Shown: piece by piece, positions 9,437 to 36,240 of the stretch
Layout of the letters: the number at the start of each line of letters is the position of its first letter
How positions within the stretch are numbered: the first letter of the stretch is position 1
Source of the DNA: Octopus bimaculoides
Lineage: Eukaryota
DNA length: 64,000 nucleotides
Assembly (NCBI RefSeq): GCF_001194135.2
Contig: NC_068991.1
Span: 960,327 to 1,024,326, forward strand
Direction of reading: 5' to 3'
Position numbers and translations under genes: made by a program
The notes under the pieces: model-generated
The model's input: only the letters and a program-made list of their open reading frames with translations
Database searches by the model: none
What the model was told of the DNA's origin: nothing

Positions 9437-9706
9437 CAGTTGGCATAACCGGTCTCCCCCTATACCAAGTCATAGAACAACGAGAAACTCATCCACCCTG
9501 TAAAAACACCACAAAACTCACACCGCTCATATTGTCCACTACAAGGACTAACTGCACTCTGGCTGTGAGATGGATGAAGATGTCTTTTTAAAAATCTCAG
9601 AAAACAGAACGCAGCATACACTACACCTAACCACAAACTCGTGGCTAGAATATATTACAAGAATTTCAAATTTTGGTACAAGGCCAGCAAGTTCAGAGAG
9701 GGCGGA

Positions 9707-9873
9707 AGTCGATTACATCGACCCCAGTATACAACTGGTACTTCTTTTATCGACCCCCAAAAGGATGAAAGGCAAAGTCGATCTCGGCGGAATTTGCACT
9801 CAGAACGTAAAAGCAGTCGAAATGCCGCTAAGCATTTTGGCCAGTGTGCGAACGACTCTGCCAGTTCACCGAC
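9707..9873 (-). mobile_element. SINE family A copy
   Basis: Reverse complement of the 37387 consensus. Confidence 0.8.
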
Positions 9874-9876
9874 TTC

Positions 9877-9918
<42 letters not shown>

Positions 9919-9920
<2 letters not shown>

Positions 9921-10295
9921 CAGGCAAAAAAATATCTAAGTGAATTCCGAATACAAAAAATTTCAGAATTAGACGTACTAGAAACAAGCGCAGAAAAAGG
10001 TAAGCACGTGAAAATCCGTACCTTTGATATTCTGACTGATAAATGGCAAGAAAAACCTCTCAATGGCAAATACCCAAAGAGAGCGAATAATGCCGATGTT
10101 GACAAAGCCCTTACCCATCAATGGCTAATGGCTTCTGGCTTTAAATCAGAAACGGAAGGGTTTATCATAGCAGCCCAAGATCAATACCTACCTACAAGGA
10201 ACTACCAGGCCAACATATTAAAGAACGGCAGCTTCCCAATATGTCGTGTATGTCAACAACAAAATGAAACCATTGATCATGTTGTCTCCATGTGC
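9919..10295 (+). mobile_element. Dong/R4-clade LINE fragment (C-terminal zinc knuckle region)
   Basis: KPLNGKYPKR...QWLMASGFKSETEGFIIAAQDQYLPTRNY...CRVCQQQNETIDHVVSMC. Confidence 0.85.
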
Positions 10296-11199
10296 AAACC
10301 CGAATTGCTGCTGTGTGGTTTCGAGTTCAGTTCTATTGCGCACAATCTTGGGCAGGTTTCTTCTACTATAGCCCTGGACTGTGAATGAATTTGGTAGACA
10401 GAAACTGTGAGGAAGCCTATCGTGTATGTGTGTATTTTGTTGGTCCTCCCACACTGCTTTACAACTGGTCTTGATTGTTTATGTCCCCCGTAACTTAGCG
10501 GTTCGGTCAAAAACCGATAGAATAAATACAAGACTTTAAAAAAAGTAAGTACTGGGTTTGATTCGTTCGACTAAATTCTTGAAGGCGGTGCCTCAGCATG
10601 GCCATAGCCCACTGACTGAAACAAGTGAAAGATAAAAGATATGCGCGTGGAATACATGCTACATTGATTATTGACAAAATACTTTTGGTCAATAAACTTC
10701 GACCAGAACGTAACCTGACGAGATACGTGTTGCGTTTCAAAAATTGTACATCAAAAGTATGTTGCATGTCTGTTATGTTGATGTTGTCCTCGTCCGTTTC
10801 ACGTTTTATTCACTTCTTTCCCGAAACAGTAAAACATATTTTTGTTTTAATTAATTTCTTTATAAAACTTGTGGAAAAGTTAATTAAAAAAAACAGGCAA
10901 ATAATGGCAAAATTAACCTAAGTATATGACAATGCTTACGTTTCAGTACAGGAAGTTGTCTTCAGTACAGGAAGTTGTCTTCAGCACTGCCTTTATTTAT
11001 AGAGAAATCCATGCGGCTTGTGATTCAAACAGTTTAAAATATTTCAGCGTCTAGAAGATGTGACATAATTACTAAATGTCAATTAAAATTAACTCCATTT
11101 GAGAAGGTGAGATAATCTCAAGATTTAAGAATTCTCCAAAGTTGACTGACGTACCATTAAGGAAAAGGGCGTGCTTATTGTGTGGAGATAAAAAGACAG

Positions 11200-16301: not shown

Positions 16302-16989
16302 NNNNNNNNNNNNNNNNNNNNNNNNNNNNNNNNNNNNNNNNNNNNNNNNNNNNNNNNNNNNNNNNNNNNNNNNNNNNNNNNNNNNNNNNNNNNNNNNNNN
16401 NNNNNNNNNNNNNNNNNNNNNNNNNNNNNNNNNNNNNNNNNNNNNNNNNNNNNNNNNNNNNNNNNNNNNNNNNNNNNNNNNNNNNNNNNNNNNNNNNNNN
16501 NNNNNNNNNNNNNNNNNNNNNNNNNNNNNNNNNNNNNNNNNNNNNNNNNNNNNNNNNNNNNNNNNNNNNNNNNNNNNNNNNNNNNNNNNNNNNNNNNNNN
16601 NNNNNNNNNNNNNNNNNNNNNNNNNNNNNNNNNNNNNNNNNNNNNNNNNNNNNNNNNNNNNNNNNNNNNNNNNNNNNNNNNNNNNNNNNNNNNNNNNNNN
16701 NNNNNNNNNNNNNNNNNNNNNNNNNNNNNNNNNNNNNNNNNNNNNNNNNNNNNNNNNNNNNNNNNNNNNNNNNNNNNNNNNNNNNNNNNNNNNNNNNNNN
16801 NNNNNNNNNNNNNNNNNNNNNNNNNNNNNNNNNNNNNNNNNNNNNNNNNNNNNNNNNNNNNNNNNNNNNNNNNNNNNNNNNNNNNNNNNNNNNNNNNNNN
16901 NNNNNNNNNNNNNNNNNNNNNNNNNNNTTTACCCTTTCTGTTATTCAGGTGTTCCATTCCATTCAAAAAACAGCGTTCAAAGCGAGAAA

Positions 16990-17089
16990 TTTAATTGGTT
17001 CGTTTCACTAACGGAACCCATTTCCACCTTTTCCACTCACCCCGTTGCTATGACACCGTACCAGACGCTTGTTTTCTAACAAGGTAAGA
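16990..17089 (+). promoter_or_regulatory. Candidate DNAAF1 promoter and 5'UTR exon with RFX X-box
   Basis: GTTGCTATGACACC at 17044-17057 is one mismatch from GTHNYY-AT-RRNAAC. An inverted CCAAT (ATTGG) lies ~50 nt upstream. Strong donor AAG|GTAAGA at 17083/17084. The first coding exon starts with cag|ATG, so an upstream non-coding exon is required. Confidence 0.55.
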
Positions 17090-17123
17090 AGACTCAACTG
17101 TTTTGTCTCCACATTATCATCTC

Positions 17124-17164
<41 letters not shown>

Positions 17165-17526
17165 CTCTTTCTCTCTCTCACGCTTTCTCTCTCTCTCTCT
17201 CTTTCTCTCTCTGTCTCTCATCTCACATTTAATAATTCAACTGCCATTTTATTTGTTTTATCAACTTTTAAACACTCCGTGTTTCCTTCAGACACTTTCA
17301 CCTCGTTTTAATTTTCTTTTCAAATATCTCCTGTTTTGTTAATGGCGTTCGGGGTTCAAATATTGACTTGGTTCACTTCACTTTTCTTGGTTTGATTCAA
17401 GGAACTGGTATAATATAATGCGGGGAGGTGTGCAAAAAGGGCAATTTCGTCCCCCCTACAGTCCCCTCTCAGCCCTCCGTCCAATGGAATTAGAGGCTTT
17501 CTGTCACTATCAAACATCGCACCCCC

Positions 17527-17559
<33 letters not shown>

Positions 17560-18937
17560 AAGACATATGGAAAATACATACACATATTTATTACTATACA
17601 TAAGTACGTACGTACATACATACATACATAAATACATACATATATACATGCATACGTATGTATCTGTTTGTGTCTATGTTCATAAGTGGGTACTTAAACA
17701 TGCATACGTATAAATGCGTAAATACGTATATGTTTCATTATCATTTACTGTACGTTTCTCATGCTGGCATGGGTTGGATGGTTTGACAGGACCCGATGAG
17801 CGTCAGGGCCCTATCATGCTCCAGTGTCTGCTTTGGCATGGTTTCTACAACTGGCTGCTCTGCCTGATGCCAATCTCTTTACAGAGTGGAGTAGGTGCGT
17901 TTTTCAAGCCACTGGCACGAGTGAGGTCGCCATGTGACTATATATAGTTAAACTTAAACACACACAGAGGCACATGCGTACACATATATGTATGTGTGTC
18001 ATATAACTTGCAAGACAGAAAAGAAGAGGCAAAAAGAAAAGGGGAAAAACTCCCATTTGTAAGAGGAAGTATTTGCAAGGAGAAGGTGACGGTGGGGCTA
18101 GTAGAGTCAGTGGTTGTGCTGTGTGTTTGTGAGAATGTCAGCTGCAATAGCGTGATGTCTGTTTTATTTGTTATTGTTATTATTATTATAGCTTATTCAG
18201 TGGTGGTTTTGTAGTTTTAAAAAGACAACCCTGTAATACAATAACTCACATATAGACAAGGAATCTGTTTGTCTACTTTTAGCTCTTCTGACAACCTGTT
18301 GTTTATCCTATCATCATCACATGATGCTATTCTCTGGATTAACACAGCCTTGAATTTCAAAGCAACTATTGACCACACTGCCACTTGACTTAATACTCAA
18401 ACATGACAGCCAGTTGTTATCCCTGCTCTCACATGACACATTCACTGGACCAATACAGATTTGACTTTTTGATGTAATTAACATTCATATAGTCACATGA
18501 TCCTCTGACCCTGCGTCCAAACACCATAAAATTGAGCAAATTTTCAAAACCTTTGTCAGAATCAAGATAAATTATATAGCACATGTGCCGGTGGCACATG
18601 AAAAATAACATTCGAACGTGGTCATTGCCAGTGCCGCCAGACTGGCTCCCATGCAGGTAGCACATAAAAACACCTTTTGAGCATGGTCATTGCCAGAAGT
18701 GCCTGACTGGCCCTCATGCCGGTGGCACGTAAAAGCACCAACTACACTCTCGGAGTGGTTGGTGTTAGGAAGGGCATCCAGATCAGATTGAGCTTGGTGC
18801 AGCCTCCTGATTCACCAGTTCTCAGTCAAACGGTCCAACCCATGCCAGCATGGAAAGTGGATGTTAAACAACAATGATGATATATATATGTATGTATATG
18901 ATGATAGACTTGTATCTGTTTTTTTCATTCTCTTCAG

Positions 18938-19148
18938 ATGCCCACCACCATTAAAATATCTGCTGATGACATCACAACTGCTACAACCAACACCAACACC
19001 AGTGCCACCCCCCACAACAACAACAACAACAGCAACTCTACAGAACTGCCACCTTCTCTCAGCCAATCCAATTCTGATGCTAACAACATAGTTTCTACAA
19101 AACCAGGAGCAGGAATTGCTGAAGATTCTGTTTTTGAAACAGAAAATG
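18938..19148 (+). CDS. DNAAF1: DNAAF1 coding exon 1 ([11 protein letters not shown]...ETEN)
   Basis: ttcag|ATG; donor G|GTAAAT, phase 1. Confidence 0.7.
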
Positions 19149-19932
19149 GTAAATGATTTTGTTTTCCATCAAAATTTACAGAGTTTGTGATATTTCTAAA
19201 TTAATGACGTTTGTTGTTGATTGGTTAATTGGCATTCAGTTCTTGTTAATGGTACCCTACGGTGTCCATGTAAGAGTAAAATGTCAGTAGTGCATGTGGG
19301 GACAGGTACTGGACTGTGTCTGTGGTAAATAGGGACCACTGGATGGTATAGTTCTCTGTATTGTATTAAGGATTTAAATACTTCACTCTCAACAGATTTT
19401 GGCTTCAAATTTTGGCACAATGCCAGTAAATTTGAGGGGAGGGGGAAGTCGATCACATCGACCCCAGTACTCAGTTGGTACTTATTTTACTGACCCCAAA
19501 AGGATGAAGGGCAAATCAACCTCAGCAGAGCTTGAACTCCAGACATAAAGACCAATGAAATGCAACAAAGCATTTTGCCAACCATTCTGCCAACTCACTC
19601 AGTCTTTTACTCTCAAAAGATATTAAAGTTATTTTGATCTCCAATTGATTCCAGTGATTTCCAGTGTTCTTTGTTTAGTGGCTCCAAACCTAGGGTCCGC
19701 AGAACACTGGTGGTCTGTGGTGGGGGGGGGGATGAACTAAATTCAAAATTTCATATATATATATNNNNNNNNNNNNNNNNNNNNNNNNNNNNNNNNNNNN
19801 NNNNNNNNNNNNNNNNNNNNNNNNNNNNNNNNNNNATATAAAAGGATAAGCATATTAAAAGGGGTCCATGGGAAAACACATTTAAATAAAAGGGTTGGAA
19901 ACCACTGGTTTATACCATTGATATGAAGTTGT

Positions 19933-19967
<35 letters not shown>

Positions 19968-22162
19968 CTTTCTCTGTTTCTTTCTTTCTCTTGGTATTTA
20001 TTATTCACTTACAGACAAGTATGTACTTACACATTCAAATTTATTTCAGATGAAACCACCAATCAGAGTGAATTTGCTGGAGATTGCTCCAAGACATTGG
20101 AATCTACTGAAGATTGTCCAGAGATGGTGGGAACCATTGGGGATTGTCCAAAGACAGTGGAAACTGTTGGGGATTGTCCAAAAATATTGGAAGATGTTTC
20201 AAAGACAGGAGAAGGTTTTGGAGATTGTCCAGAAATAGTGGAAGCTGTTGGAGATTGTTCCAAGACAATAGAAAAAGCTAAAGATTGTTTGAACTTGGTT
20301 GTATCTGCTGGAGATTGTTCAAACACAGTGGAATCCATGGCAAATTCTCTAGACACAATAGAATCTGTTGGAAATTGTTCAAAGACAATTGAACCTGTTG
20401 GGGATTGTCCAAAGATATTGGAAGATGTTGTAGATTGTCCAGAGACAATGGAATCTGTTGGAGATTGTTCCAAGACATTGGAAGATGCTAAAGATTGTTC
20501 AAACTCAGTTATATCTGCTGAGGATGTTTCAATAACAATGGAATCTATTGGAGAATCTCTGAAGACAGTTGAATCTACTGGAGTTTGTTCAAAGACTGTG
20601 GAAGCTGTTGGAGATTGTACAAAAATATTGGAAGCTGTTGGAAGTTGTCCAGAGATACTGGAATCTACTGGAGTTTGTTCAGAGACAGTGGAATCTGTTG
20701 AAGATTGTCCAAAGACATTGGACGATGTTAAAGTTTTTTCAAATGTAGACATATCTGCTGCAGACATTTCAAAGACAGAGGAATCTACTGGAGAATTTTT
20801 GAAGAAAGTGGAATCTACTGAAGATTGTTCCAACACAGTGGAATTTGTGGATGATTGTCCAAAGACAGTGGAATCTGTTGAAGATGGTTCAAAGACACTG
20901 GAAGTTGTTGAACATATTCCAAATAAAGTGGAAGCTGTTGAAGATATTTCAAAGACAGGAGAAAATCTTGGAGATGTTTCAAAAACTGTGGAAGATGCTG
21001 GAGATATTTCAAAGACAGCAGAAACTGTTGAAGATTCTTCAAAACTAGTAGAATCTGCTGAAGATGTTCCAAAAATAGTAGAAGATGCTGGAGATAGTTC
21101 AAAGACATTGGAATCTGAGACAGTGACTACAAATGGTTTGGATGGAAAACAGAAAGACAGTGCAAAAGACAATGGTAATTATTCCATTTTTAGTTAGTTC
21201 CTCCTAGCAGATTTAACTTCGGATATTGATGTGTGTTTGGCAAAGTTCTTTAATGTTGTAATGTCATTGAATGTTGATGGTATAACTCTTATGCTGTGCT
21301 GTTGGGATGTCATGGATTTTTTTTTAATTGTTGGGTCTGGAGGGAGTGGGATTGCCCGTAGCCTTTCAAGACCAGTGAGATTGATGCCATTAAGGTTTGT
21401 CTTAAACCTTTGTAAGTCAACCTTTGCAGAAGAGAGACACGAGCAAGGGGGGAATTCCAGGGGGATGGCTTATTCGGGAGGAAGGACTGGGATTTGTGAT
21501 TAGTGCAGGGTCTGGTGGGTGGTTGGGAGGTGTGGAGATGAACACAACAAGTGGGATAGGAGGAGGAGTGGCAAGTGGGACAGAAATGCCTGAATGGAGA
21601 GTGTATGGGCCCAGCTTGTGCTGAGGAGAAGTGGTCAGTAATATAATTGTGCTAGAAAAGGAAGAGAATGGGGGAATGAAACTGGACCCTGGTGGACATC
21701 TCAGTTGATAGAATGAGGAACAGAAAGAGTTCCACCATGGAGGGTCTTGCCATCTGACAGAATGGGAGACAGATGCAGCCCTTAAGCAGGACGTTTTTAA
21801 TAGACTTGCATGCTATAGCCAAAATCTTTGTTGATGCTGAGGGCAACATATTACTTTCACCAAATTCCTTCAAGACAAGAGCTTACTGGTGACACAGGAG
21901 AGTTGGTCAGATCTGGCTTGTTTTGGTATAACTGTGCTGTAGCAGCAGCTTCAGATGCTGGGGAATTGGGATGTGTAACAACTGTATAACTGTAGGTTGT
22001 GATGTCAATGACCATTGATGATATAACTGTGCTGTGGTGTTCATTGGTGTAGTTTCTGATGGAGAATGTAAGAAAGAAAAGAAAGAAGAACCATCACATG
22101 AGAAATCTGCTTTTGAAAAGGTGGATGATCGCTGGCCAAGGTAAGACCAAGTTCATATTTAC

Positions 22163-22199
<37 letters not shown>

Positions 22200-25100
22200 T
22201 TAATTGTAATGTTGTTTGCCACCCTACATCTTTCATCTTCCCCTCCCCTACTGATAATTACCACCAGCCACACCTCCACCCTTGTTCAGCCTCCCCTGCA
22301 TTATCATCCCCCTCTCCTCCCACCTCTATCCTCTTTCTGGTCCTATAAACTCATCCACCCGCCCTTCCACCTCCTCTGTAGTCTCTCTCAGACTCACCTT
22401 TTTGGGTATAAGAGAATAGGCACCCTCATATATAATTTAGTTGTGGTGATGGTGGTGCAGTTGCCATGCATCTCTTCTCTAGCAACATGCCTCTGCTTGT
22501 CCCTCTGTCATACTTTAACCTTTCAACTCTCACCACAAAGCCACCTCCCTCCCTCCCCACCTCTCTCAGCTTTAGGGTCTTGTCTTGCAAGTTACTGAGC
22601 GACCTCATTAATGGTGGGGACATAGGGTGGGAGTGGGGGAGAAATCACTCAGAACTCTCTGCAAAATGGTTGGCATTTGGAAGGGAATCCAGCCATAGAA
22701 ACCAAAGCAGACCCGGAAGCATGATGGTTCTGTGTGGCTCATTATTGGATCCTGTCAAACCGTCCAACCCATGCCAACATGGAAGGCAGACTTTATGTGA
22801 TGATGATAATGATGATGGTGGTAGTGTTGATGATGATGTTGATGATGGTGATGGTAGTGGTGGTGGTGGTGGTGGTGGTGGTGGTGGTAGTGATGATGAT
22901 GATGATATTACTGCCCACTGTACCCTGTTATATTAGTTTGCACCATTCTGTCACCCCACAGACTGACCAAGAAATTCCTCCGCCAACACTGCAAGGAGCA
23001 CAAACTGTACCAAACACCTGAGCTTAACGATGTTCTTTACTTACACTTTAAAGGTGAGTCCGTTCTGTTGATGTTGGTCGAGAGGAAGAGAACTCTTTTT
23101 GGTGCGAAGGAGAGAGTTTCCCTACATTTGAGATGAATGTCTTCTGATGTTGATTCACTTTGGATACCTTGGGTGCTTTTAGCAGGATTGTGGGCCTTGT
23201 AATCCACCTGGCCCTTTGGTGCTTCCAGTAGGGTGGTTGGTCCAATTTGGCTCTAACTGTTGGCCTGTAGGTGTCTCTAGCGGGCAGCTGGATCCATCAC
23301 ACCTGAACAGGGTGGAAGATGCAGCACACTTGAGGGTCTGGCTGTGAAACTGATGTGACAGTCACATGACAGATTGTCCCACCAGCCAGGACAGCTTGAC
23401 ATGATGACTTGACCTACTAGAAATAACAGCTAAACCTCCCCCCTGCCATCTTAAAAAAAGGAAGGGCATATTGGATAAGTTTCAGATCCACTGAATAAAA
23501 GACTAGACTAGTCAGGACTGAAACACCTTTGTGTGTAAGGGCTGCTGACCCATGGCTAAACAACAACAACAACAATTACATGTTGTTGTACAGAATTAAT
23601 TGTAGAAGAAACATTGTTTACATTTCTAATTGTTCCAAAGGAATTAATGATGTGAATTTTCTAATTAATTGGTAACATGGCTGCTTAGCAACTGTGAGAT
23701 ACAGGGTTTGGCTGTCATTTATTTGGTTTGTTGGTGTTTTGTATTCATCTAATTCCTGTGTCTGTCTGGGGTTTCTTCTCTTGTGCAGGTATTTATAAAA
23801 TCGAGAATCTTGAAGAATATGTTGGCCTGAAGTGTCTTTGGTTAGAAAATAATGGACTCAATAAGATCGAGAACCTTGAGCATCAGGTCGAAATGAAGTG
23901 CCTCTATCTACAGCAGAATCTCATCTACAAGATTGAAAACTTGGAATCGATGCAGAAATTATCCAATTTAAATCTTTGCCACAACATGATTGAAACTGTT
24001 GAGAATTTGTGTGAGTTGCAGGTTCTGTGTTTCTCTCTTGGGAAATGGTACGAAGGGCAGATTGCTTATTATGACTTTGGGAAAATATTAGGAGTCAGCT
24101 AGTTTTATCTTGGGGGGAAAGGAAACTGTTTGAAACCCTGCCAACATGTTACCAATGTATCAGTAATCACACTTTGTTGGGGTCAGATTATAAGGGAGTG
24201 AATCTGCATAGGAAATAATGAAGTAGAGCTTTGAAAGGGGTCAGGTTATGTACTGTATCACCTACTGATGAATTAGGGTCTGGAAATGTGAGTGTCTGAC
24301 ATGAGTGGAGTTTGAGTAGAGGTTAATGGCTTTCTTTGGAAATTTGAGCGAGTTATTTGAGTGGAGTCTGTTGTAATATGGAAATTGAAGAGTGTGACTT
24401 GAGTAGAGTCTTTTTAGTGTGGACTTTAGTGTCTGTGGAAGCTGTTGAAGATATTCCAAGGGCAGTGGAAGATGTTGGGGATTGTTCAAAGACAGCAGAA
24501 GCTGTTGAAGATTCTTCAAAAATAATAGAATCTGCTGAAAATGTCTCAAAATTAGTGGATTGGTTCTTTCTGTAAATAGCATTCAGATATAAGGTATAAA
24601 AACATTATCAGGTTATCCTTGAAAATATTCCTGTTGAATTATCTACGAGAAGTGCAGGGCCAAAAGTCACAGAGATTAGAAATGGAGTTGGTGCATTTCA
24701 TATGGGTGCAGCAGTTGAAGCCATCAGATTATACCCAGATTATACCCACAGATTATCCCCACAGATTACAATATGCAATCAGGCTTTGTGTGAGTTGGCT
24801 CACCCTGTATAATATGATTATAAATATATTCAGATCGAATCAAATATATTTTGAAATTATAATTATAATTCTCAACTGTTTTTTATATTTTTCTCTCTTG
24901 TTGCAGCCTGCTTACCTCAACTGAGTACCCTCCAAATAACCCACAACAAACTATCCACTATGGAATCTGTAATCCACCTCAAAGACTGCCTGTCTATTTC
25001 AGTGCTGGATCTTTCCCATAACAGACTTGAACAACCAGAAATTGTCGAAGAAGTCTTTGCCAAAATGCCTTCCTTGGTTCGTAGTTTCTCCTCTTCCTAT

Positions 25101-25253
25101 CACCATAGTTGTGGCTGAGGTTTAGCTTCAAAACTCTGTAATGTGTCATCCCTGAATTCACTGCTTCTGTCTCACTTATGAACAACTAATCAGAGAAAAG
25201 GCCATTGACTATGGGCTGTGCTTTCTATCTATCTGCCTGACACACTCTCTCCC

Positions 25254-25331
<78 letters not shown>

Positions 25332-25461
25332 TATATATATTATCCAAAATGTACCCACTCTTTTGACAGATATATGAGTGCATCTTTTTCTTGACTTATG
25401 GTCTATTAGACAACTCACACACGTATATATATATATGTGTGTGTGTGTGTATACATGTACA

Positions 25462-25497
<36 letters not shown>

Positions 25498-26474
25498 AAA
25501 TAAAGATGGCAGCTATACACAAAATCAAACCAAATATGAATTTATAAAACAAGAGGATGGAATGAATAGGCTTTAATCACAAATCACAACAACTGTTTCT
25601 GTGCAATGATATCTTATTGCATAAAATGTTATAGAAATAATTACATAGATAGGTATGACCCAGCTGCAGCAGCTATATAATAGATATGTACTTGTGTTTC
25701 AGAGAGATGTTAGGCAAGATATTCCACTCGTTTCCCTTTGTCCCTTGTATAACATGTGTAACTGTTATTTCTTGTTTTTCAGGGAGTTTTGTATTTGATT
25801 GGTAATCCTGTTATCAGAAACATCAAGAATTACAGGAAACATGTTACCGTGGCAATTGTAAGCGAGAAACATTAATTCTACCTGTTTGACTTGAAAGTGT
25901 GTGTGTGTGTGTCTTTTATATGAGTGCAGATAATATGTGCATGTTTGTGTCTGAATGTGTTTATGTGTGTGTATATGTGTGTCTATGTGTGTGAGAATGT
26001 GTATGTGTGCATTTGTGTGTATGTGTATGTACAACCATTCAGCATGTAAACCAGCCCCATTTGGACCCAAATATTCTCCCTGTTTTATCTTCAGACTGGG
26101 CCTGATCCAGCCCCTCACACTTAGAATGTTTGTGTGTGGTGGTGTTGCTGATGATGATGATGGTGGTGGTGGTGCGGTGGTGTTGCAATCTTTCTGTCAC
26201 TCACTTTCTTCTCGTTATTGTCATACTTTGATTAATTCCCCACATAAATACTTAATTATTTTGCTTCATACCAGTAATTACATTCATAAATTGATTTTTA
26301 ATTGATATTCAATAGTTCTTGACTAGATATCCATAATAATGTTTATAAACTGAATTTTGGCAGAAAAGCCTGAAGTATTTGGATGATCGACCAGTTTTCC
26401 CCCGAGATCGTGCCTGTTCTGAAGCATGGTAGGTATTTAAGACATCGTCACAACTTTTTATACACACTTGGAGA

Positions 26475-26560
<86 letters not shown>

Positions 26561-28163
26561 CATATATACATATGTGTATGTTTATGCACTACAAAGACAC
26601 AACTGTGTATATACATCTATATGTACAGGGCGTCCACAAGGTCTGGGTACATGGAGTAAATAAAATCATAACATAAACAATTAAATATAATAAATAATAA
26701 TTTCTTAAAGTATGCGTTAATCCCCATCAACCCAGACTTTGTGGACACCCTATACATCTATACACAGCATATATATAGCATTATAAATAGTATTCCTTCT
26801 GTGCCCATGTTTAGACAAGAGTCTAAGATGACTTGAAAAGGTCACAAATTATTGTCCTTTTACTCTTGACCATGTTATGAACGGTATATCTGACCAGTTA
26901 ACACTCACTGACCAGGTCCAGTGACAGATTTGCTGTGTCAGTGTATCTTTGTGACAGAGGCTGTCATAAGAAATAGAGAACAGTTACCAAGGAATTCACT
27001 GATACAGCGAGACCCATCGATGGATTCTTATCCTATCACTGCACTGAGCTTAGATCAAAGATACTTAATTTTCAATGGCTCAATTCAGCTAGCTGCAAAT
27101 AGGTACCATGGGGTTGTACAGCTCATTGAGTATTAAAGATGGTGCCACCCACATCAGACTGAGGAATGCAATGCTGTGTTCAAAGCATTTCCGTGGCACT
27201 GTGCCATGATTGAAAATAGGGATTCTCTCAATTGTATTATGATTGGCACCACATTAACACTTATTCAACACTGCAAAGTTTACTGATGTCACAACAACAA
27301 CAACAACACACACAATCAGAACGTATTTGTGGTGGTGGTATGGCTGTTGTAGCATGGCCTGTACCATGATGAAGTAAATATGAAGAATGTTGTTGTTATT
27401 GCTGTTGTTTCTATAACAGGGCCAGAGGTGGAATAGAAGCTGAGAAGATAGAACGACAGATTTGGATTGATAAAGAAAACAAACGAATTCAAGACAGTGT
27501 GGATGGTGGGTTGATTATTACTATTACTATTATTATTACTATTATTTTTATTATTATTATCTTATTTAAAAACTCCTAAATTTTATTTCACAATATATTT
27601 CTGTTCTTGAATTTTTTGAGCATTATCTGTAGCGAGTGTGTGTGTGAATTGTGTGTAGCAGAGGTGACACCATGTGTAACCATAACAAGTAAACGATGTT
27701 GTGTTTACGATGTCTGTTTGTAGCTCTGTTGAAGATTCGGCAAAAGAGTGAGGCCAAAAAGATTCAGAAGAAATTGGATGAGAAATGGCTGGAACGAGGA
27801 GATGCAGAAAGAAACCAAAGAGAAGTTGTTATCGAGGAAAGTATTGACTGGTTGTATGGGACATACAAGACTAAATGGATTGATGTGGAGAAAGGAGGGA
27901 ACGGAGATGAAGAGAAAATAGAGGGGGAAGAAGGACTTGCAAGAAATACAACGAAGCTGAAGGAAGAAGAGGGAATATGTGTAGAAGAGAAAACAGACAG
28001 CGTTGCAGAAGAACAGACGGATGAAAGTGTTACGGAGGAGAAAAATATGGAAGAAGAACAAGATGAAAATGTGGAAGAGAAGAGTGCGAAGGTAAATATA
28101 AAGAAGTTTCCGTTTTCATCATAATTTGTAGGAAAAGTCAACAGAAATGCTTGTCTGTCTGTG

Positions 28164-28198
<35 letters not shown>

Positions 28199-31100
28199 TA
28201 TGTCTGTGTGACTCATAAGGTTTGTTGTTGTTTATTTGATTTGGTTTACATAATAATATTTAACATGATGACACAGAAATTGAGGACAATACGTCCTGAC
28301 ACCAGGCAACTTGTCAATGTTCCAATGCACTGCGTGCGCACGCGTGTGTGCATGCACCTACTTGGATATAGAGTCCCTTACTCTCTGCAAGTATGTATAA
28401 GATCATCTGATCACATGATCGACCAGACTATCAGATGTTGTTATACATCACTGGTCAGAATGCATTTGGCATTGTTTTAGTGTTTGAATGATGCCACTCT
28501 GCTAATTAGACTAATTAGGCAAGCAGGCCAACATTCCCCCTAATCGGAAGGCTATTCTGTCGCTGGGTTACCCATTTACAGCTGAGTGGACTGAGCAACA
28601 TGAAATGAAGTGTTTTGCTCAAGAACACAACACATCACTTGGTCCAAGAATCACTGGATTGTGAGTGCACTGACCACTGACCACTGAGTCACATGCATTC
28701 ACCATCCATCTGTCTGTCTATATTTGAACAAAATAACGGCCTTTATGAATACACTTAGGCAAAAAGATTACTCTAAACACACACACACACAAACAGCATC
28801 ATCATCATCATCTTTTAACATCCATTCTCCATGTTGGCATGGGTTGCACAGCTTGACAGAGTCTGGCAAGGCTGGAGAGCTGCCCAGGTTCCAATTGCCT
28901 TGTTTTGCCATGGTTTCTGCAGCTGGAGGCCCTTTCTAACATGCCAACCACTTTACAGCCTGGGGGGGCTTTTTAAGTGTCACTCGCATGCTCACTGTAT
29001 ATGTGGCAGTGACACGGGTACTTCCTGTATAGCCATACTTCGGTCCCCTCCTTCAGTGCGATACCTTACTCAGTTGAGAGGGGGTTTTGTCTTGAGAGTG
29101 TTGGCCACTTCACCAGTGCTGGTGCTATTGAAAATGTACCCAGTACATTCTATGAAGTGGCTGGCAGTGGAGCTTGGCACAACATTCTGGCTTGTCGGTT
29201 CCTTCCAAACGGTCCAACTCATGCCAGCATCGGAAAAAGGACGTTGAATAATGATAACGATGATGTGTGTGTGTAAATAGTGATTTGGAGCCGGTCCATA
29301 TGAAATATTGTGTTACAAAGTGAAGATTATATTTCCAAGTGTCATCTGGTGGAGAAATGTCTTGCCAATAATTGATCTGTTTGTTTCCATTTATAGACGA
29401 CATCATTCAAGGAGGAGGAGGAGGAGGTGAAGGAAGAAGAAGCAACGGAAGTAATTGATCTGAGAGGATCTTTGATGAAGACGGCATCAGCAACGGCAAC
29501 AGCAGACACATCAACTATTTTCAGTTCCACGGGTGAGACACACTTGTCTTCCTTTTGGTGATGATGTCTCACATCTGCGTGTGTGATTCTGCTAACACAC
29601 ACACACACATACTTACATACATACATACAAACATGCTTACATAAACATGCATAGACACATAAACAAATGTACACACACATACATTTGTCCATCTGATTCC
29701 AGCATGGAACAGGGACATTAGATGACGACGATGGTGATGATGGTGATAACAAACACACATACACTAACAAATCCACACATACGCACACACACACACGCAC
29801 ACACACATGCATGCATGCACGTACACACACACAGACACACTTGTTTAGCCTGACATGTGACCATATTTCTCACAAAATACACATTTTAGGCTTTAATTGA
29901 ATTTGAAAATCATCATACATTTTGTGGGATTTATAAAATAATTAATTTCCGTAAAATGATATGTCTATAAGTGGTATTTGGAACATAAATGCAGCATAAT
30001 TTCTTGCATTTAATTTTTGGAAGTTTTTTTCTTGAATACATTAAAAGAAGACAAGTGATTTTAAGTAGAGGGGTAGATGCAGGTACAGGATGGGTTAATC
30101 TGGCAGATACAGCCCCAAGACTTGTACCATGTCAGCATCATTCATTAACCATTCCTCTATGTTGTTTAGAATTCAGCAGACCAATAACATGTTTCCTTGT
30201 TTTGATTTTGATAGTTTGTGATCAAGTGACACCCTCCACGGAGAAAAGCCATTCTATTTTGAGAATTACCGAAATTAATGGTAAGTAGTTGAATTCACAA
30301 ACTGAAGATGATTGGTCTCTCATTTCAGGGGAGATTGATCTGTGATCCACATCTGAAAGTAAGGAATTTGAATGAATGAAATTCTTAATTGTTAACGTTT
30401 GTTTCTAGAAGACATCTACCGAGTTATCGTCTGTTAGTGAAGATTCTCATTGGTGACCTTTAAAGGTCACCTCAAGTAATCCAGACTTTTAAAGAGTCTT
30501 TCTAACACAACTCATCTCGTTCCTAGTTGTAGTTTACCAATTCCAAGACAGATTGTGTTCTGGTGGCACATTAATATATCACTGATTCTCCATCCTGACT
30601 GAATGGTCAAATGGACAAGTAATATCTTAATTAGCACAAATTAATTGTAATTACAATTAAGTTCTGTTTTACTATCACAATGACCAAACACTTGCGTATT
30701 GCATTAGCATTGTCACACGATAGTATGTATTGGTATTTATCAAATCTGTATTCTTAATCAACACTATGTATTGTTACAGATCAATATGTATTGTTACAGA
30801 TCAATATGTATTGTTACAGATCAATATGTATCTTTATATATCATTGCGTATATCGTTACATCTCGAATTTGTATTTGTATTTCTACTCAGGTGAAGACAG
30901 CTCATCAGACAGTGAATGTAATGAAGGTGCAGAGGTGAGTGGAACTTGGTGGTGGTGGTGGTAGGGACACATGTTTATGACAAGGGGTCACCACAACTCC
31001 TAATAATAGCATACAGGGAATAAAACAGAAAATCATTGGTTGACAGTCACAACCATTTACAGAGTTTTCCACAAACCACGAGAAGAATAAACATAGAAAC

Positions 31101-31524
31101 TGTACTTGTAATGAAATAGAAACCAGAAATCAACAAAAGGGAAATACTATATGTAGAATAAGTGATGGAATCTGCTAGGACTTAACTGTTGTTAAGCCTG
31201 ACCAAAGCAATTTAAATGGCTTCGATTGACAGAAACTATATGGAAGACCATCTGACGTGTGTGTGTGTATGTGTGTGTGTAAAGGCTGGTATTCCACAAT
31301 TTCGCTCATCATTCTCTCAGCCAAAATGGAAGCATGATGTTTGGACATTCTTTGTCAACATAATGACTGGTTGTTGCTCTCTGCTTTCCCAGGCTTGTTG
31401 AATAAAACAATTCCCAGCTTGAAAAACAGCTAAAGGTTGGCCCCAGGAAGGGGTTAAATTGGGTTAAAGAGTCCTCTTCTCTTTGCAACAATCTGATTTA
31501 AATAATACACACACACGCGTGCAC

Positions 31525-31558
<34 letters not shown>

Positions 31559-32887
31559 CTTGTTTCTTTCTGTGTTCCTTTCTGTAGAAGAGCATAGGCT
31601 CGAAACATTAAAGACTTTTTCACTTCCCGAGTGTTATACTAATACATCTGTTTGTTTTCTACACCACCTGCCTTCATCTGTTGTTTTTTTTTTTTGTGAA
31701 TTCTCCCTATAATATATATAATATATAATATAATATATATATATATTATATAATATATCGAATTAATATATAAATATATATATATCATATGTATATCATG
31801 ATGTAGTTCCGACCTTGTTATTTTTGTGATTTTCCTTGTAGGACATCCCTGTTCTTGAAGACATTGACACTGATATGGCTTCTCTGGAGAAAAATGGGAG
31901 TTTATCAAATAAGGTGGAGGTAAGGTTTCTAATTAGAAACATAGAATCATCATCACCATCACCACCATCATTTTACATCTGCTTTTCCATGCTGACTTGG
32001 GTTGGACAGGATTTTTTGAGGCAATTCTTTCATTCATCTCTTACAATACAGAAGGAGGATGCAGTTGCACCTATTCTAAAAAAATGCCCAACATATAGAC
32101 TTCATTAACACACACTCAGACATTGTTTGTTCATTTTAAAGTCCATTTTTGCCATTGCTTGCATGGGTTAGAGGAATATATTATTGAGGCATTACTTTAC
32201 AGCTGGATGCTCTTCCTGTGGCTTAGCTTTGCCTGTTTCTCAAGTGAGGATCTCTTATTCTTCGTAGCTTTGAAGGTACATTGAAGAGCATTGGCCGTAG
32301 AAACTCTTGTGCCTTTACAGATTCTGTAATTCTGCCTGATCCTAGCATGCACGCATGCATGCACACACGCACGCACACACGCATGCACGCACACACGCAT
32401 GCACTTATCAGGTCATTAAGAATGAAAAGTTTGATTTGAAACTGAAAGTTTATTTTTCTTTATCTCATCAAAAAGCAATGCAGTTAATCAAAGTAGGCAC
32501 CTAAATTATCAACACAATTTAGCCATTTTATTGGGAACTTATTTATGGCGCCAGCAAAGAATTCTGGAGAGCCAGAGGTGAAGAAATCACGAAATGCTGT
32601 TTCCGCATCTTCTTCAGATTTAAAGTTGTCTAATGCCTGGCAAACCTGGTAGTCAGTTGGTGCAAGGTCTGGTGCAAGGTCTGGTGCAAGGTCTGGTGAG
32701 TGGCAGAGTGCTTCCGAGTTCAGTTCCTGTAACATGAGTAATGTTCTTTGTGCATTAATACATCTGTTTGTTGTTTACACATCCATCTTCATCTTTTGTT
32801 TTTTTTTTGTAAATTCTCACTATNNNNNNNNNNNNNNNNNNNNNNNNNNNNNNNNNNNNNNNNNNNNNNNNNNNNNNNNNNNNNNNN

Positions 32888-32920
<33 letters not shown>

Positions 32921-34017
32921 AATCTTATCTGTTTGCTATTTTGCAGGAAATATATAAACCAATAAAGATATGTTTGGTTGAAGAAATGGCGCCATTGAAA
33001 GATATTACTGCTACTACTACTACAACTACGACTATTAATACCAGTTCTACTACTAGTACTACTACTACTGCTGCTGCTGCTGGCATGTTTAGTAATAACA
33101 ATAGCAGTGATGGTGGCAGGGCGTTGGTGGAAGAGATTAATGAGGGAGTAGATGAGAGCAGCAGGGTTAACGGTCAGTCGAGGTGTAACCCTTACAGAGT
33201 ATTGATCCAAGATATTACTGGTATTGGCAAAAGTCAAAGTAATGAGGTCATTGAGATCAATCAGATTACTGATCTGGATGAAGTAAATGAAATTGATGAG
33301 ATCAATGAAATCAGTGAGGTCGTTACAGGTGATGGTCATTTAAACGAAGGCATCAGTGGTGCTGGTCACAGCGAAATGGATGGAGTAGCTGGACACTACA
33401 ATTGTCGTAGTAGTAGTAGCAGCAGCAGTAGCTGTAGCAGCAGCAGTAGTAGCAGCGGTAGTAGTAGTAGTGGTCGATGCAGTCCTCTTACTTTAGACAT
33501 TATCGATGCTGAGGACGTAGACAATAACGATGATATCACCGGTCAGTGTAAAGGTCAGTGTTTGGAACCTGCCATGGACAATCTTGGTTGCAGTGACCCT
33601 TGTGATGTGGCAGCTACATCTGGGGGTTTAAAAGATGAAAAAGGGATTATGGGGAAACCAGATGCAGAGGACAGTGTCTGTGGAAAACATAGGCAGCATT
33701 GCTTTGGTAAGACAGAATTTGCCAGTTCTTGCAGCGTACGTGAAACGAAATCGGCCACCATTCTGAGTATGAGCTGTGAGGAGATGCATGGTGGTCAATG
33801 TTCTCATAGTGGACGAAAGAGTGAGAAGAGTTTAAACCTGAGTTCCGATGGCACTGAACTAACAGAACGATGGGTTTACCCTGCTGCTACTTTCTACTCA
33901 AAGAATCTCCAGAAACAACCGGAAGATTCTTTAAGTAACACACAGGATGAGAAGGACAAATCAATTAGAGAAAACGAAGAATGCTGTGGTGATTCTAAAG
34001 AAGAAAATTTGGTTTGA
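18938..34017 (+). CDS. DNAAF1: Dynein axonemal assembly factor 1 (LRRC50/ODA7), 15 coding exons, 1298 aa
   Basis: join(18938-19148,20050-21174,22053-22140,22962-23053,23789-24010,24907-25076,25783-25857,26364-26428,27420-27505,27724-28091,29397-29532,30215-30280,30891-30934,31842-31919,32947-34017) = 3897 nt, all GT-AG and in frame. Diagnostic motifs: [34 protein letters not shown], six SDS22-like LRRs, LRRcap [22 protein letters not shown]. The LRR core is near-certain; the low-complexity exons are less so. Confidence 0.93.
19676..19907. mobile_element. hAT-like MITE spanning an N gap
   Basis: tagtggctccaaacct ... agggttggaaaccactg termini. Confidence 0.55.
20050..21174 (+). CDS. DNAAF1: DNAAF1 exon 2, decapeptide-repeat exon (375 codons, phase 1-1)
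   Basis: tttcag|AT; stop-free for 1125 nt; donor G|GTAATT; phases match both neighbours. Confidence 0.75.
22053..22140 (+). CDS. DNAAF1: DNAAF1 exon 3 (...EKVDDRWPR)
   Basis: tgtag|TT; AG|GTAAGA; ends in the conserved xPR that precedes the LRR N-cap. Confidence 0.85.
22962..23053 (+). CDS. DNAAF1: DNAAF1 exon 4 ([31 protein letters not shown])
   Basis: cacag|A; G|GTGAGT; signature DNAAF1 N-cap. Confidence 0.95.
23789..24010 (+). CDS. DNAAF1: DNAAF1 exon 5 (LRRs: [20 protein letters not shown]...)
   Basis: tgcag|GT; T|GTGAGT; KIENLE repeats. Confidence 0.95.
24907..25076 (+). CDS. DNAAF1: DNAAF1 exon 6 ([16 protein letters not shown]...VLDLSHNRL...MPSL)
   Basis: tgcag|CC; TTG|GTTCGT. Confidence 0.93.
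25783..25857 (+). CDS. DNAAF1: DNAAF1 exon 7 ([25 protein letters not shown])
   Basis: tttcag|GGA; ATT|GTAAGC; LRRcap GNP..NYR. Confidence 0.93.
26364..26428 (+). CDS. DNAAF1: DNAAF1 exon 8 ([22 protein letters not shown])
   Basis: ggcag|AAA; TG|GTAGGT. Confidence 0.95.
26626..26752. mobile_element. 127-bp Tc1/mariner-type MITE
   Basis: 23-bp TIRs cagggcgtccacaaggtctgggt / acccagactttgtggacacccta, flanked by TA on both sides. Confidence 0.8.
27420..27505 (+). CDS. DNAAF1: DNAAF1 exon 9 ([28 protein letters not shown])
   Basis: aacag|G; G|GTGGGT; matches the conserved post-LRR helix. Confidence 0.92.
27724..28091 (+). CDS. DNAAF1: DNAAF1 exon 10 (ALLKIRQK... acidic coiled coil)
   Basis: ttgtag|CT; AAG|GTAAAT. 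Confidence 0.88.
29397..29532 (+). CDS. DNAAF1: DNAAF1 exon 11 ([10 protein letters not shown]...TIFSST)
   Basis: ttatag|ACG; G|GTGAGA; phase 0 to 1. Confidence 0.7.
30215..30280 (+). CDS. DNAAF1: DNAAF1 exon 12 ([21 protein letters not shown])
   Basis: ttgatag|TT; G|GTAAGT; phase 1-1. Confidence 0.65.
30765..30830. repeat. Minisatellite, 3 x 20 bp (tatgtattgttacagatcaa)
   Basis: Three perfect copies plus a partial one. Confidence 0.95.
30891..30934 (+). CDS. DNAAF1: DNAAF1 exon 13 ([15 protein letters not shown])
   Basis: ctcag|GT; GAG|GTGAGT. Confidence 0.72.
31578..31613 (+). ncRNA. Minimal hammerhead-like motif (A6U variant) inside a Penelope-type terminal repeat
   Basis: cuuu CUGUAGA a GAGC-auag-GCUC GAAAC AUU aaag. 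Helices I and II are perfect; the core has a substitution. Confidence 0.45.
31842..31919 (+). CDS. DNAAF1: DNAAF1 exon 14 ([11 protein letters not shown]...)
   Basis: ttgtag|GAC; GAG|GTAAGG. Confidence 0.75.
32405..32740 (-). mobile_element. Mariner transposon 3' relic
   Basis: SPDLAP(x3)TDY...[12 protein letters not shown]-terminus; TIR-like tatcaggtc at ~32407. Confidence 0.85.
32947..34017 (+). CDS. DNAAF1: DNAAF1 terminal exon (acidic, poly-T/poly-S, 356 aa)
   Basis: ttgcag|GAA; long stop-free frame to TGA at 34015-34017. Confidence 0.78.
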   Translation, partial: EIYKPIKICLVEEMAPLKDITATTTTTTTINTSSTTSTTTTAAAAGMFSNNNSSDGGRALVEEINEGVDESSRVNGQSRCNPYRVLIQDITGIGKSQSNEVIEINQITDLDEVNEIDEINEISEVVTGDGHLNEGISGAGHSEMDGVAGHYNCRSSSSSSSSCSSSSSSSGSSSSGRCSPLTLDIIDAEDVDNNDDITGQCKGQCLEPAMDNLGCSDPCDVAATSGGLKDEKGIMGKPDAEDSVCGKHRQHCFGKTEFASSCSVRETKSATILSMSCEEMHGGQCSHSGRKSEKSLNLSSDGTELTERWVYPAATFYSKNLQKQPEDSLSNTQDEKDKSIRENEECCGDSKEENLV

Positions 34018-34095
34018 AAATCGTGGAACCAGATGAGAAGAAAGGAGAAGAACAAGAACAACAACAATAAAAGTATCTGTTTGTCTGTCCTGTAG

Positions 34096-34128
<33 letters not shown>

Positions 34129-34205
34129 CACACACACACATACACACATACACACGTACACAGTTTGAGTAGTGTCTCTGTCTGTTTGTCTGTCTGTCTC
34201 ACTCA

Positions 34206-34252
<47 letters not shown>

Positions 34253-35205
34253 ATACACACATATGCATACAAATATATCATATATTCATATATGTATGTG
34301 TGTGTATATATGTGTATATATAAATATAAATATATATATATACATATATATATACATACATATATATGTACATACATACACATGTGTGTGTGTGTATGTG
34401 TATGTATATGTATGATTTTATTACATACACATCACTAATCAATCATACAGAGTTCCCTATTTTCGTTCACATGATTTCATTTACAGAAAAAATATCTTAA
34501 AAACGTGTCTGGGTCCTCAGTCCAAAGCATTCACAAATAAAGTTGGTTGTGTATTTGTTTAACTGAAAAAGGAAGCAAATAATGACGAACAGACAGACAT
34601 GTTTCACAGAACTATTAAAGCATGAAAAGGGTTAATATTTTCTTCCAGAACATTCCAACAATAAAAGATATGAAGGAAAGATATGGAAATTGGTTAAAAT
34701 TGTGGAGAAATATTGTAAAAACAAAGAATAAATACAAAGCTGATGAGTTACAAGTGTGTCCGTGAGGTTGAGGTACAAGCTTAGATTAGTGACAAGAAAG
34801 TCCTCATTTCAAATCTTACCAAAGTCATCGTTATTGTGTCTTTGAGTAATGGAGGCAACACATTACTCTTCTTGGAGCTTCTGCTTCATGCTCTCTTTGT
34901 GTTGCTAAGAATAATAGTTAAATTCCCTTCAAACCACACCTATTTTTGAAGAGGAAGGACACAGATAATATAATGTTATGGTATATGTTTAGAATAATGT
35001 AATAGGATAGACATATTTGATGCTGGGTCTGTTGGGTCAGGGCTGACTTGGGGCTAAATACCTGTCCCATGGTAACCACACCGCTCCTCCGACCAAAGGT
35101 AACTCATGAAGATACCACTTTTGCCATTTGCCTATCTTCTCCAACTCCACACCTATGGCTGTGCAAAATAATGGAAGGTTTTTTTGCTACACACACACAC
35201 ACACA

Positions 35206-35245
<40 letters not shown>

Positions 35246-35724
35246 CACGTACGTACATGTGTGTAAAGTAGTAGCAGCAGTGGGACTATTGTGAAATTGA
35301 TGACTGTTTCTAGAGTGAACCAGTCAATAATTGAACTTGTGCTTGGTAGAGCATCAAAACAAAATGCCTTGTGGTAATTAGTTACAACCCTTTACATTCT
35401 GAAGTTGATTTTGCCCTTCATCCTCCCGGGGCCACTAAAACTGAATACCAGTCATGGAGGGGGGGACTTCTCCTCCTTGCAAAAGAATCCTTTATGGCCT
35501 TGTTGTCTATCTTATTATTACAGTTTGATATTGTTAGTTATTTGTACCAATAATTTCATTAATTATAAAACACAAAATAATTAAAACTATTTTCTATTTC
35601 AATTTGTCTTTGTTTTATAACTGTTTCATTAAACACTTAATTGAATTATTATTATTATTATTATTATTACTGATACCCATCCAACCCATGCCAGCATGGA
35701 AAATGGACATTAAGTGATGATGAC

Positions 35725-36240
35725 GATGATGATTACTGTGATTTTTTTTTCTTTCCCTGGTTTATCCATGTCTCGTCTCAGCTCCATCCTGTAGCTTAGA
35801 GACAAAACAGTTTCCCCAAACACATGAGCTGTGCCAAGTATTGCTACCAACTGATTCCTATGAAGTTTGGTATTTGCAGCCTTTGATGTCACAATATTGC
35901 TTTCTTTGAGATGGGTTAGGCTGGGTTAGACATGCTCTTGAAGGAAATCTCTGTCTTAGACCGAAAAGAGGAAGGTGAGCTTAAAAGCAAACAAAACTAC
36001 AGGGCACTGAAAAGGAAGCATGATATTGAAAGAAAGGGCCTGAAAGTAGTAGTGGAGGAACTGAACCAGCACCTCGTTGCAAAGAAAGCAAAAATGGTCA
36101 CCACCAGAATAGGTTATTCAGGGTAGATCAGAAGAGATTCTATAAAGAAATAAATGGAGAGTGTACAGATGAAAAGTTGATGCCAAAGGTTTTGGAGTGA
36201 CATCTGGAGCTAGTTAAGTCCATGAGAGATGGTTATACTA
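35725..36240. mobile_element. Dong/R4 LINE fragments (3' end on minus at ~35725-35900; internal piece on plus at ~35930-36240)
   Basis: AILGTAHV motif on minus; RKGLKVVVEELNQ on plus. Confidence 0.65.

Follow-up and report, generated by a model that had tools for sequence, protein, structure and literature searches.

Coding minisatellites are tandem arrays whose unit length is a multiple of three, which grow through the duplication of units and blocks, keep their reading frame, evolve quickly in their residues, and encode no stable fold. The window analysed here, a 64,000-nucleotide (nt) stretch of the Octopus bimaculoides genome (assembly GCF_001194135.2, contig NC_068991.1, positions 960,327 to 1,024,326, forward strand), holds an array that resembles them in each respect (a 30-nt unit, unit and block duplication, a preserved frame, fast-evolving residues, and apparently no stable fold). 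The array lies within one 1125-nt exon of the octopus orthologue of DNAAF1 (LRRC50/ODA7), a gene that serves the assembly of ciliary motors, ahead of the leucine-rich repeat (LRR) core. The canonical form of this protein, as in human DNAAF1 (725 amino acids, aa), has only a short N-terminus (PMC12633730). The octopus protein shares with it the LRR core and the following segment (58–65% identical), whereas it reaches 1298 aa and has 475 residues ahead of the core. In our best reading, the O. bimaculoides DNAAF1 orthologue truly has the repeat as one of its coding exons, and we favour, with moderate confidence, an added coding-minisatellite exon that would give the protein a disordered, acidic N-terminal extension in which cysteine is a decaying trait of the founder unit.

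An earlier note on this stretch had described a 375-codon exon of about 35 acidic decapeptide units with a 30-base-pair (bp) period, a description that proved correct. The exon is read in the frame from 20049 and has phase 1 at both ends. Manual layout of the array gave 35 units, all in perfect register, with the consensus unit GGAGATTGTTCAAAGACAGTGGAATCTGTT (translated as GDCSKTVESV), and the sole indel is the lack of 9 nt, in frame, from one unit. Inside the exon, 10 non-repeat residues precede the array and 18 residues follow it. Tandem Repeats Finder reported the 30-bp period over 20218–21117 (30 copies, 67% matches) along with higher-order periods of 60, 90, and 210 bp, the last at 79%, and the mean pairwise identity among units is 67%. 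The encoded peptide is strongly acidic, with 89 Asp and Glu residues against 31 Lys, a net charge of −58 (−0.155 per residue), and an isoelectric point of 4.05. The note had also placed twenty cysteines at a single repeat position and described a polar array in which Cys is replaced in the last third, both of which were borne out. The exon has exactly 20 Cys, every one at unit position 3 (units 1–4, 6–9, 11–15, 18–22, 26, and 27), with 18 in units 1–22 and only two in units 23–35, where position 3 reads F, I, F, C, C, G, I, I, V, I, S, V, and S. Across the array, Cys is replaced at this position by I, V, F, S, or G in 14 of 34 units. By itself, the shared Cys register follows trivially from the descent of the units from a single TGT codon.

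To locate the conserved exons, a human DNAAF1 core was used, as a probe only, and it matched downstream of the repeat at 22963–23055, 23773–24027, 24906–25076, 25786–25870, 26364–26429, and 27421–27507. The assembled 237-aa core matches only DNAAF1 proteins (best E value 1.9e-97 with 65% identity, to a fish DNAAF1), a search with the full 1298-aa protein gave DNAAF1 matches throughout, and Pfam LRR_4, LRR_8, and LRR_9 score above their cut-offs at residues 544–686. Judged from these similarities, the LRR core marks the protein as a clear DNAAF1 orthologue; the LRR exon series of the gene model runs on to 34017. An exhaustive search found the repeat peptide to be 100% identical to part of XP_014788744.1/A0A0L8FLP4 from O. 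bimaculoides (residues 71–445), publicly named "uncharacterized protein LOC106882542". This agrees with the position in the N-terminal part of DNAAF1 that the note had assigned to the exon, with conserved exons 1 and 3 on either side. The sole recorded locus of the protein (CM046611.1, GCA_001194135.2) is base-for-base the window at 16938–36017, and an exact protein look-up returned the genome record only.

The intron phases link exons 1, 2 (the repeat exon), 3, and 4, and the splice sites of the repeat exon are canonical and match the phases of both conserved neighbours. A direct splice of the repeat exon to exon 4 (21174 to 22962) was rejected since it gives a stop (...AAT GAC TGA), and the 88-nt exon 3 is therefore required. 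The N-terminus encoded by exon 1 resembles those of invertebrate DNAAF1 (MPSITVLSD, MPSIEVLPD, MPLIEEITD, MPLIVELSD, and MPTIIEIDD), and the junction of exons 3 and 4 (...RWP/RLTKKF) resembles KYPSVLT and GPRMTK in other DNAAF1 proteins. Together, exons 1 and 3 encode ~100 aa, and the whole gastropod N-terminus measures 100–147 aa; given that these two exons already make up the gastropod length, the repeat exon looks to have been added between two ancestral exons. In the predicted gene model, the repeat exon belongs to the transcription unit of the LRR core.

The consensus unit is free of stops in each of its three forward frames, which provides an internal control for the open frame of the array. 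When the observed number and spectrum of changes were applied to the consensus in simulation, 9.2 stops were expected in the coding frame and none is present, whereas the other two forward frames hold 14–15 and 18–20 stops against 17.1 and 13.8 simulated. Since units share changes by descent, we also compared types of substitution, ignoring copy number. The consensus unit can undergo 90 different single substitutions; the array contains 61 of these and none of the six types that create a stop (hypergeometric P = 0.00076); with transversions only, 36 of 60 types occur, still with none of the six (P = 0.0027). The lack of stops, the lack of stop-creating types, and the lone, in-frame indel are therefore good evidence that the open frame of the repeat exon is kept by selection, as the note had suggested given the nucleotide divergence of the units.

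The residues tell a different story from the frame. The non-consensus fraction at codon positions 1, 2, and 3 is 0.24, 0.24, and 0.15, with no excess at the third position. The ratio of nonsynonymous to synonymous substitution rates (dN/dS), computed among the units of the octopus array, is 1.4 across all unit pairs and 0.78, 1.22, and 2.15 between the three 210-bp blocks. With dN/dS near 1, the repeat residues are without detectable selection.

The array grew by unit duplications and then by block duplications, with the blocks having since diverged by ~20–38%. Many units have their best partner at a lag of 7–8 units, and this lag, along with the 210-bp period, argues for block duplication after unit duplication. 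Identity is 97% between units 4 and 12 and 77–87% within the pairs 7/14, 8/15, 15/23, and 17/25. A stray piece of the repeat in an intron between LRR exons (Table 1) shows no flanking similarity, and its coding-equivalent frame is still open. It holds TGT (Cys) at a codon that reads ATT (Ile) in its present-day counterpart in the array, a difference that would fit a progressive loss of Cys in the 3′ third of the array.

As for the source of the founder unit, the 3′ end of exon 1 (19089–19148) aligned to a repeat unit (21031–21065) with a score of 30 against 18.8 ± 2.1 for shuffled sequence (above 200 of 200 shuffles), a hint that the founder may have come from exon 1. Both exons also end in AATG/GTAA, and the similarity of the donor regions is not significant. 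Invertebrate DNAAF1 proteins share the N-terminal motif MP[LST]I.E[IL].D (window 18938–18975 in the octopus), and annelid and sea-slug DNAAF1 carry a variant of it, LIE[EA]I.D, internally and repeated one to three times (the motif is also seen in gastropods). A relaxed pattern chosen post hoc, [IT][VLIM]E.[VI].[DE], matches 10 octopus units, and a phmmer comparison of the octopus repeat with orthologue N-termini (290-sequence set) gave no significant similarity (all E > 0.1). Derivation of the unit from the LIE[EA]I.D motif may serve as a lead.

The earlier note had proposed a metal-binding, redox, or phase-separation module, and neither the thiol-based part nor the condensate part of this proposal found support in the peptide. 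The Cys residues make up 5.3% of the exon (20 of 375), at spacings of 10–40, with no CxC, CxxC, or CC motif and only one His. They are lost in 14 units, and dN/dS is ~1. The peptide has no Arg, Tyr, or Trp and five Phe, a composition ill-suited to self-association. Its high net charge and its lack of aromatic or Arg stickers would count against condensation driven by the repeat itself, and coacervation with basic partners would be possible. A Pfam scan of the peptide found nothing above cut-offs, and an Rfam scan of the window found no RNA family. Single-sequence AlphaFold2 modelling produced low-confidence helices and coil only (mean predicted local distance difference test score 41.9, predicted template modelling score 0.22). 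A beta-helix, solenoid, or pentapeptide-repeat fold was rejected, given the 4-3-3 spacing of the hydrophobic positions (3, 7, and 10) and the absence of any such fold in the AlphaFold2 model.

On the favoured reading, a coding minisatellite would have entered the gene after its ancestral first exon and before the short exon that precedes the LRR core, and would then have grown via duplications of single units and of 7–8-unit blocks. Its translation would yield a 375-residue, strongly acidic, and probably disordered extension before the LRR domain. Selection would mainly purge stops and frameshifts, because these would truncate the protein and lose the essential LRR part downstream, and the residues would drift almost freely. 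The periodic Cys would have been inherited from the founder TGT codon and would now be in the course of being lost rather than maintained. The function, if any, would most likely be generic: the extension would serve as a flexible spacer with negative charge, or as a solubility tail, tuning the contact of DNAAF1 with its partners. It would then parallel the acidic N-terminal arrays that shark and salamander DNAAF1 gained independently.

Several points weigh against this reading. The gene model with the repeat exon is a computational prediction, and the array comes from a short-read assembly, in which the copy number may be wrong (the window has 11 runs of N between 1014 and 63667, the nearest being a 71-bp gap at 19765–19835 that lies 215 bp ahead of the repeat exon; the array itself is free of N). 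The Cys-to-Tyr change (TGT to TAT) never occurs, though G-to-A is the commonest change in the array, and some constraint at the Cys position could be the reason. A picture of drift leaves the low third-position variation unexplained, and this variation may reflect constraint at the nucleotide level, e.g., splicing enhancers in an unusually long exon. The drift of the residues was judged from one cephalopod, O. bimaculoides, and AlphaFold modelling from a single sequence tests disorder only weakly.

Other explanations concern whether, and in what form, the repeat is part of the DNAAF1 message. It is improbable, in our judgement, that there is no exon at all and that gene predictors joined an intronic minisatellite with a fortuitous open frame into the model. 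The exon does rest on a predicted model, no homologues were found, dN/dS is ~1, the antisense frame is open too, and a piece of the repeat does lie in an intron. However, such an origin sits poorly with zero stops against 9.2 expected (14–20 in the sister frames), with the absence of all six stop-creating substitution types even among transversions (P = 0.0027), with the in-frame nature of the lone indel, and with splice sites that bound the open frame and have the phases that both conserved neighbours need. It is unlikely, if less strained, that the minisatellite was exonized recently and serves only as a cassette of minor or tissue-specific use, with the main DNAAF1 messenger RNA joining exon 1 to exon 3. 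The phase 1-1 symmetry to which the note had drawn attention is real, and exon 1 joined to exon 3 stays in frame. Exons 1 and 3 alone give a typical gastropod N-terminal length, a length of 1125 nt makes this a very long internal exon, and catshark DNAAF1 has many annotated isoforms of differing N-terminal length. However, the inclusion form is the only one found among database proteins of 714–2271 aa, and the clear selection against stops implies that inclusion affects fitness.

The remaining explanations turn on the Cys codon. We give little credence to a functional thiol module (metal or heme binding, redox sensing, or disulfides) that would exert control over DNAAF1, or over its condensates, in the ciliated cells or sperm of the octopus. 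The strict register of 20 Cys, the 16 Asp-Cys and nine Cys-Pro dipeptides (the latter being the core of heme regulatory motifs), the missing Cys-to-Tyr change, the TGT kept in the stray intronic copy, and the maintained frame could all be read in its favour. Set against these are the replacement of Cys by the chemically unrelated I, V, F, S, and G, mostly in one contiguous third of the array, dN/dS near 1, the low Cys content without clustered motifs and with a single His, and the lack of any Pfam hit, convincing match in the PDB, or relative. Moreover, the units are non-independent, which makes the missing Tyr weak evidence. In a more elaborate version, to which we assign only a slender chance, the register-fixed Cys would act as a thiol switch on DNAAF1 (through reversible disulfides, or metal or heme bound via Asp-Cys-Pro), tuning its partitioning or activity in ciliated cells or sperm as one selected solution within a wider convergent trend towards acidic arrays in animal DNAAF1.

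The Cys codon also governs the minus strand, where a 369-codon open frame covers the array (Table 1). That the selected product is a Ser/Thr/Pro-rich repeat protein encoded there seems to us very improbable. This antisense frame holds no stops against 6.6 expected, or against 4.3 given the open sense frame (P(0) = 0.012 under independence). However, it shares its wobble positions with the sense frame, and stops in it would come almost only from TGT-to-TAT (Cys-to-Tyr) or from TCA-to-TAA, which creates a stop in the sense frame also; the antisense frame is open since Cys-to-Tyr is absent from the array. Taking the sense frame as the by-product instead gives P(0) = 0.001, there are no minus-strand gene calls in the DNAAF1 locus, and the plus-strand splice sites and phases suit the DNAAF1 model. 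With few independent changes at the Cys codon, no minus-strand gene, and the plus-strand splice fit, we rejected an antisense gene and take the frame to be a by-product of the sense frame. The total lack of Cys-to-Tyr remains a small unexplained point.

Table 1. Features of the DNAAF1 locus discussed in the text (window positions).
Feature	Position	Strand	Details
Coding span of the DNAAF1 orthologue LOC106882542	18938..34017	+	1298 aa; tblastn, exons 98–100% identical
Exon 1, first coding exon	18938..19148	+	Ends ...FETEN; out in phase 1; donor AATG/GTAAAT
Acceptor AG of repeat exon	20048..20049	+	After pyrimidine tract (tttatttcag/AT)
Repeat exon	20050..21174	+	Phase 1-1; protein residues 71–445
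Antisense open frame	20063..21172	-	369 codons over the whole array; shares wobble positions with sense frame
Repeat array proper	20079..21119	+	35 units of 30 nt, one of them 21 nt; consensus GDCSKTVESV
Donor GT of repeat exon	21175..21176	+	AATG/GTAATT, consensus-like
Exon 3	22053..22140	+	88 nt (VSDGECKK...VDDRWP); phase 1 in, phase 2 out
Exon 4, start of conserved DNAAF1 core	22962..23055	+	
LRR and further conserved exons	23788..27507	+	~23788–24009, 24906–25076, ~25786–25870, 26364–26429, 27421–27507; approximate boundaries
Stray repeat copy in intron between LRR exons	24433..24560	+	~4.2 units; 83% identical to 20968–21082

Elsewhere in the window, a (TGA/TGG)n microsatellite lies at 22798–22906 on the forward strand, just upstream of exon 4; it reads as poly-Asp/Gly in one frame and is outside the gene model. 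A second gene follows downstream on the same strand (~39439–48553), with a RhoGEF (DH) domain at 40122–40526 (E value 3.5e-11) and a PH-type domain at 44357–44689 that falls below the Pfam cut-off. Two open frames, at 55619–55969 on the reverse strand and 9552–10385 on the forward strand, look like transposable-element remnants, with Pfam giving only weak HTH_11 and zf-RVT matches; from reading them by eye, we take one to be mariner-type transposase-like and the other to be tied to reverse transcriptase.

Comparison with known proteins fits the earlier view that the repeat is lineage-specific. A word-indexed search returned no relatives, and an exhaustive search of 1.84 billion representative proteins gave only the octopus protein itself; its other matches were unrelated low-complexity repeat proteins (units such as QQVDDVPNNI, GDVSRGNESL, and DRHADCMRGI). 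The protein homologue searches appear to cover targets of ~0.55–1.75 times the query length, and the exon-only query missed its own 1298-aa protein on account of this range. Neither the LRR-core nor the full-length query returned cephalopod DNAAF1 orthologues, with the full-length query covering proteins of 714–2271 aa and orthologues of 415–713 aa being unsampled. A search of the literature found no paper with both DNAAF1 and octopus, and none linking DNAAF1, tandem repeats, and disorder. In the PDB, the repeat matched only the repeat region of IcmE/DotG, and weakly (7muc chain AG, residues 489–693; E value 2e-4, 23.8 bits). Both share a 10-residue periodicity; however, the score is within the range of many unrelated low-complexity repeats and the octopus 4-3-3 spacing misfits a five-residue beta-helix, and we judged the match to be an effect of periodicity and composition.

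Repeated Cys also calls to mind metallothionein clusters and Cys-Pro heme motifs, and nine octopus units do have Cys-Pro with a hydrophobic residue two to three positions on. Metallothioneins are far richer in Cys. The octopus repeat differs from both in its 5.3% Cys, in having no CxC, CxxC, or CC, and in a context that is acidic rather than basic or neutral. Compared to coding minisatellites in general, it stands apart in its fixed-register Cys, unusual for an acidic disordered repeat, and in having no relative of its unit.

The closest parallels lie within DNAAF1 itself. The earlier note had started from the premise that DNAAF1 orthologues have only a short disordered N-terminus, which fails outside forms such as the human one: while the median N-terminal length in the retrieved set is ~138 aa, catsharks have 506–706 aa, salamanders 487–524 aa, and Lepidoptera ~750–800 aa. 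Several of these long proteins are misnamed 'titin homolog' or 'dentin sialophosphoprotein-like' in the databases. The catshark N-terminal region comprises ~30 copies of SEGTEAVS and repeats of ~75 aa, with many annotated isoforms differing in length; the salamander regions are built from repeats of 50–100 aa, and the arrays of both groups are acidic (net charge −40 to −81). Moths, too, have a long extension, with no obvious tandem repeat in the one sequence that was read. In catshark and salamander DNAAF1 (Scyliorhinus canicula, Lissotriton helveticus, and Ambystoma mexicanum), as in the octopus, the array lies upstream of GPR/WPR-[ML]-T-K and is long, lineage-specific, strongly acidic, and rich in S, T, E, and V. 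Unlike the octopus array, these arrays have almost no Cys (1–3 per 500–700 aa). Since the units of octopus, catshark, and salamander are unrelated, the expansions are independent.

As a type, the exon is unremarkable, being a tandem-repeat expansion that keeps its frame within a presumably disordered stretch of protein, and it already stands in a public gene model whose protein is labelled only "uncharacterized". It appears to be a clear instance of exon addition, with exons 1 and 3 reproducing the normal molluscan N-terminus, and it would exemplify new coding sequence tolerated upstream of an essential domain, in which the open frame is selected and the residues are not. Long DNAAF1 N-termini have been gained independently in octopus, catsharks, salamanders, and moths, with acidic arrays in the first three. 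If this recurrence is selected, it would point to a charge-dependent role of the DNAAF1 N-terminus in dynein pre-assembly, a role open to testing in Xenopus or zebrafish systems that already exist. The octopus exon is a new case of a recurring pattern of N-terminal extension in DNAAF1, and its fixed-register Cys is its one unusual trait.

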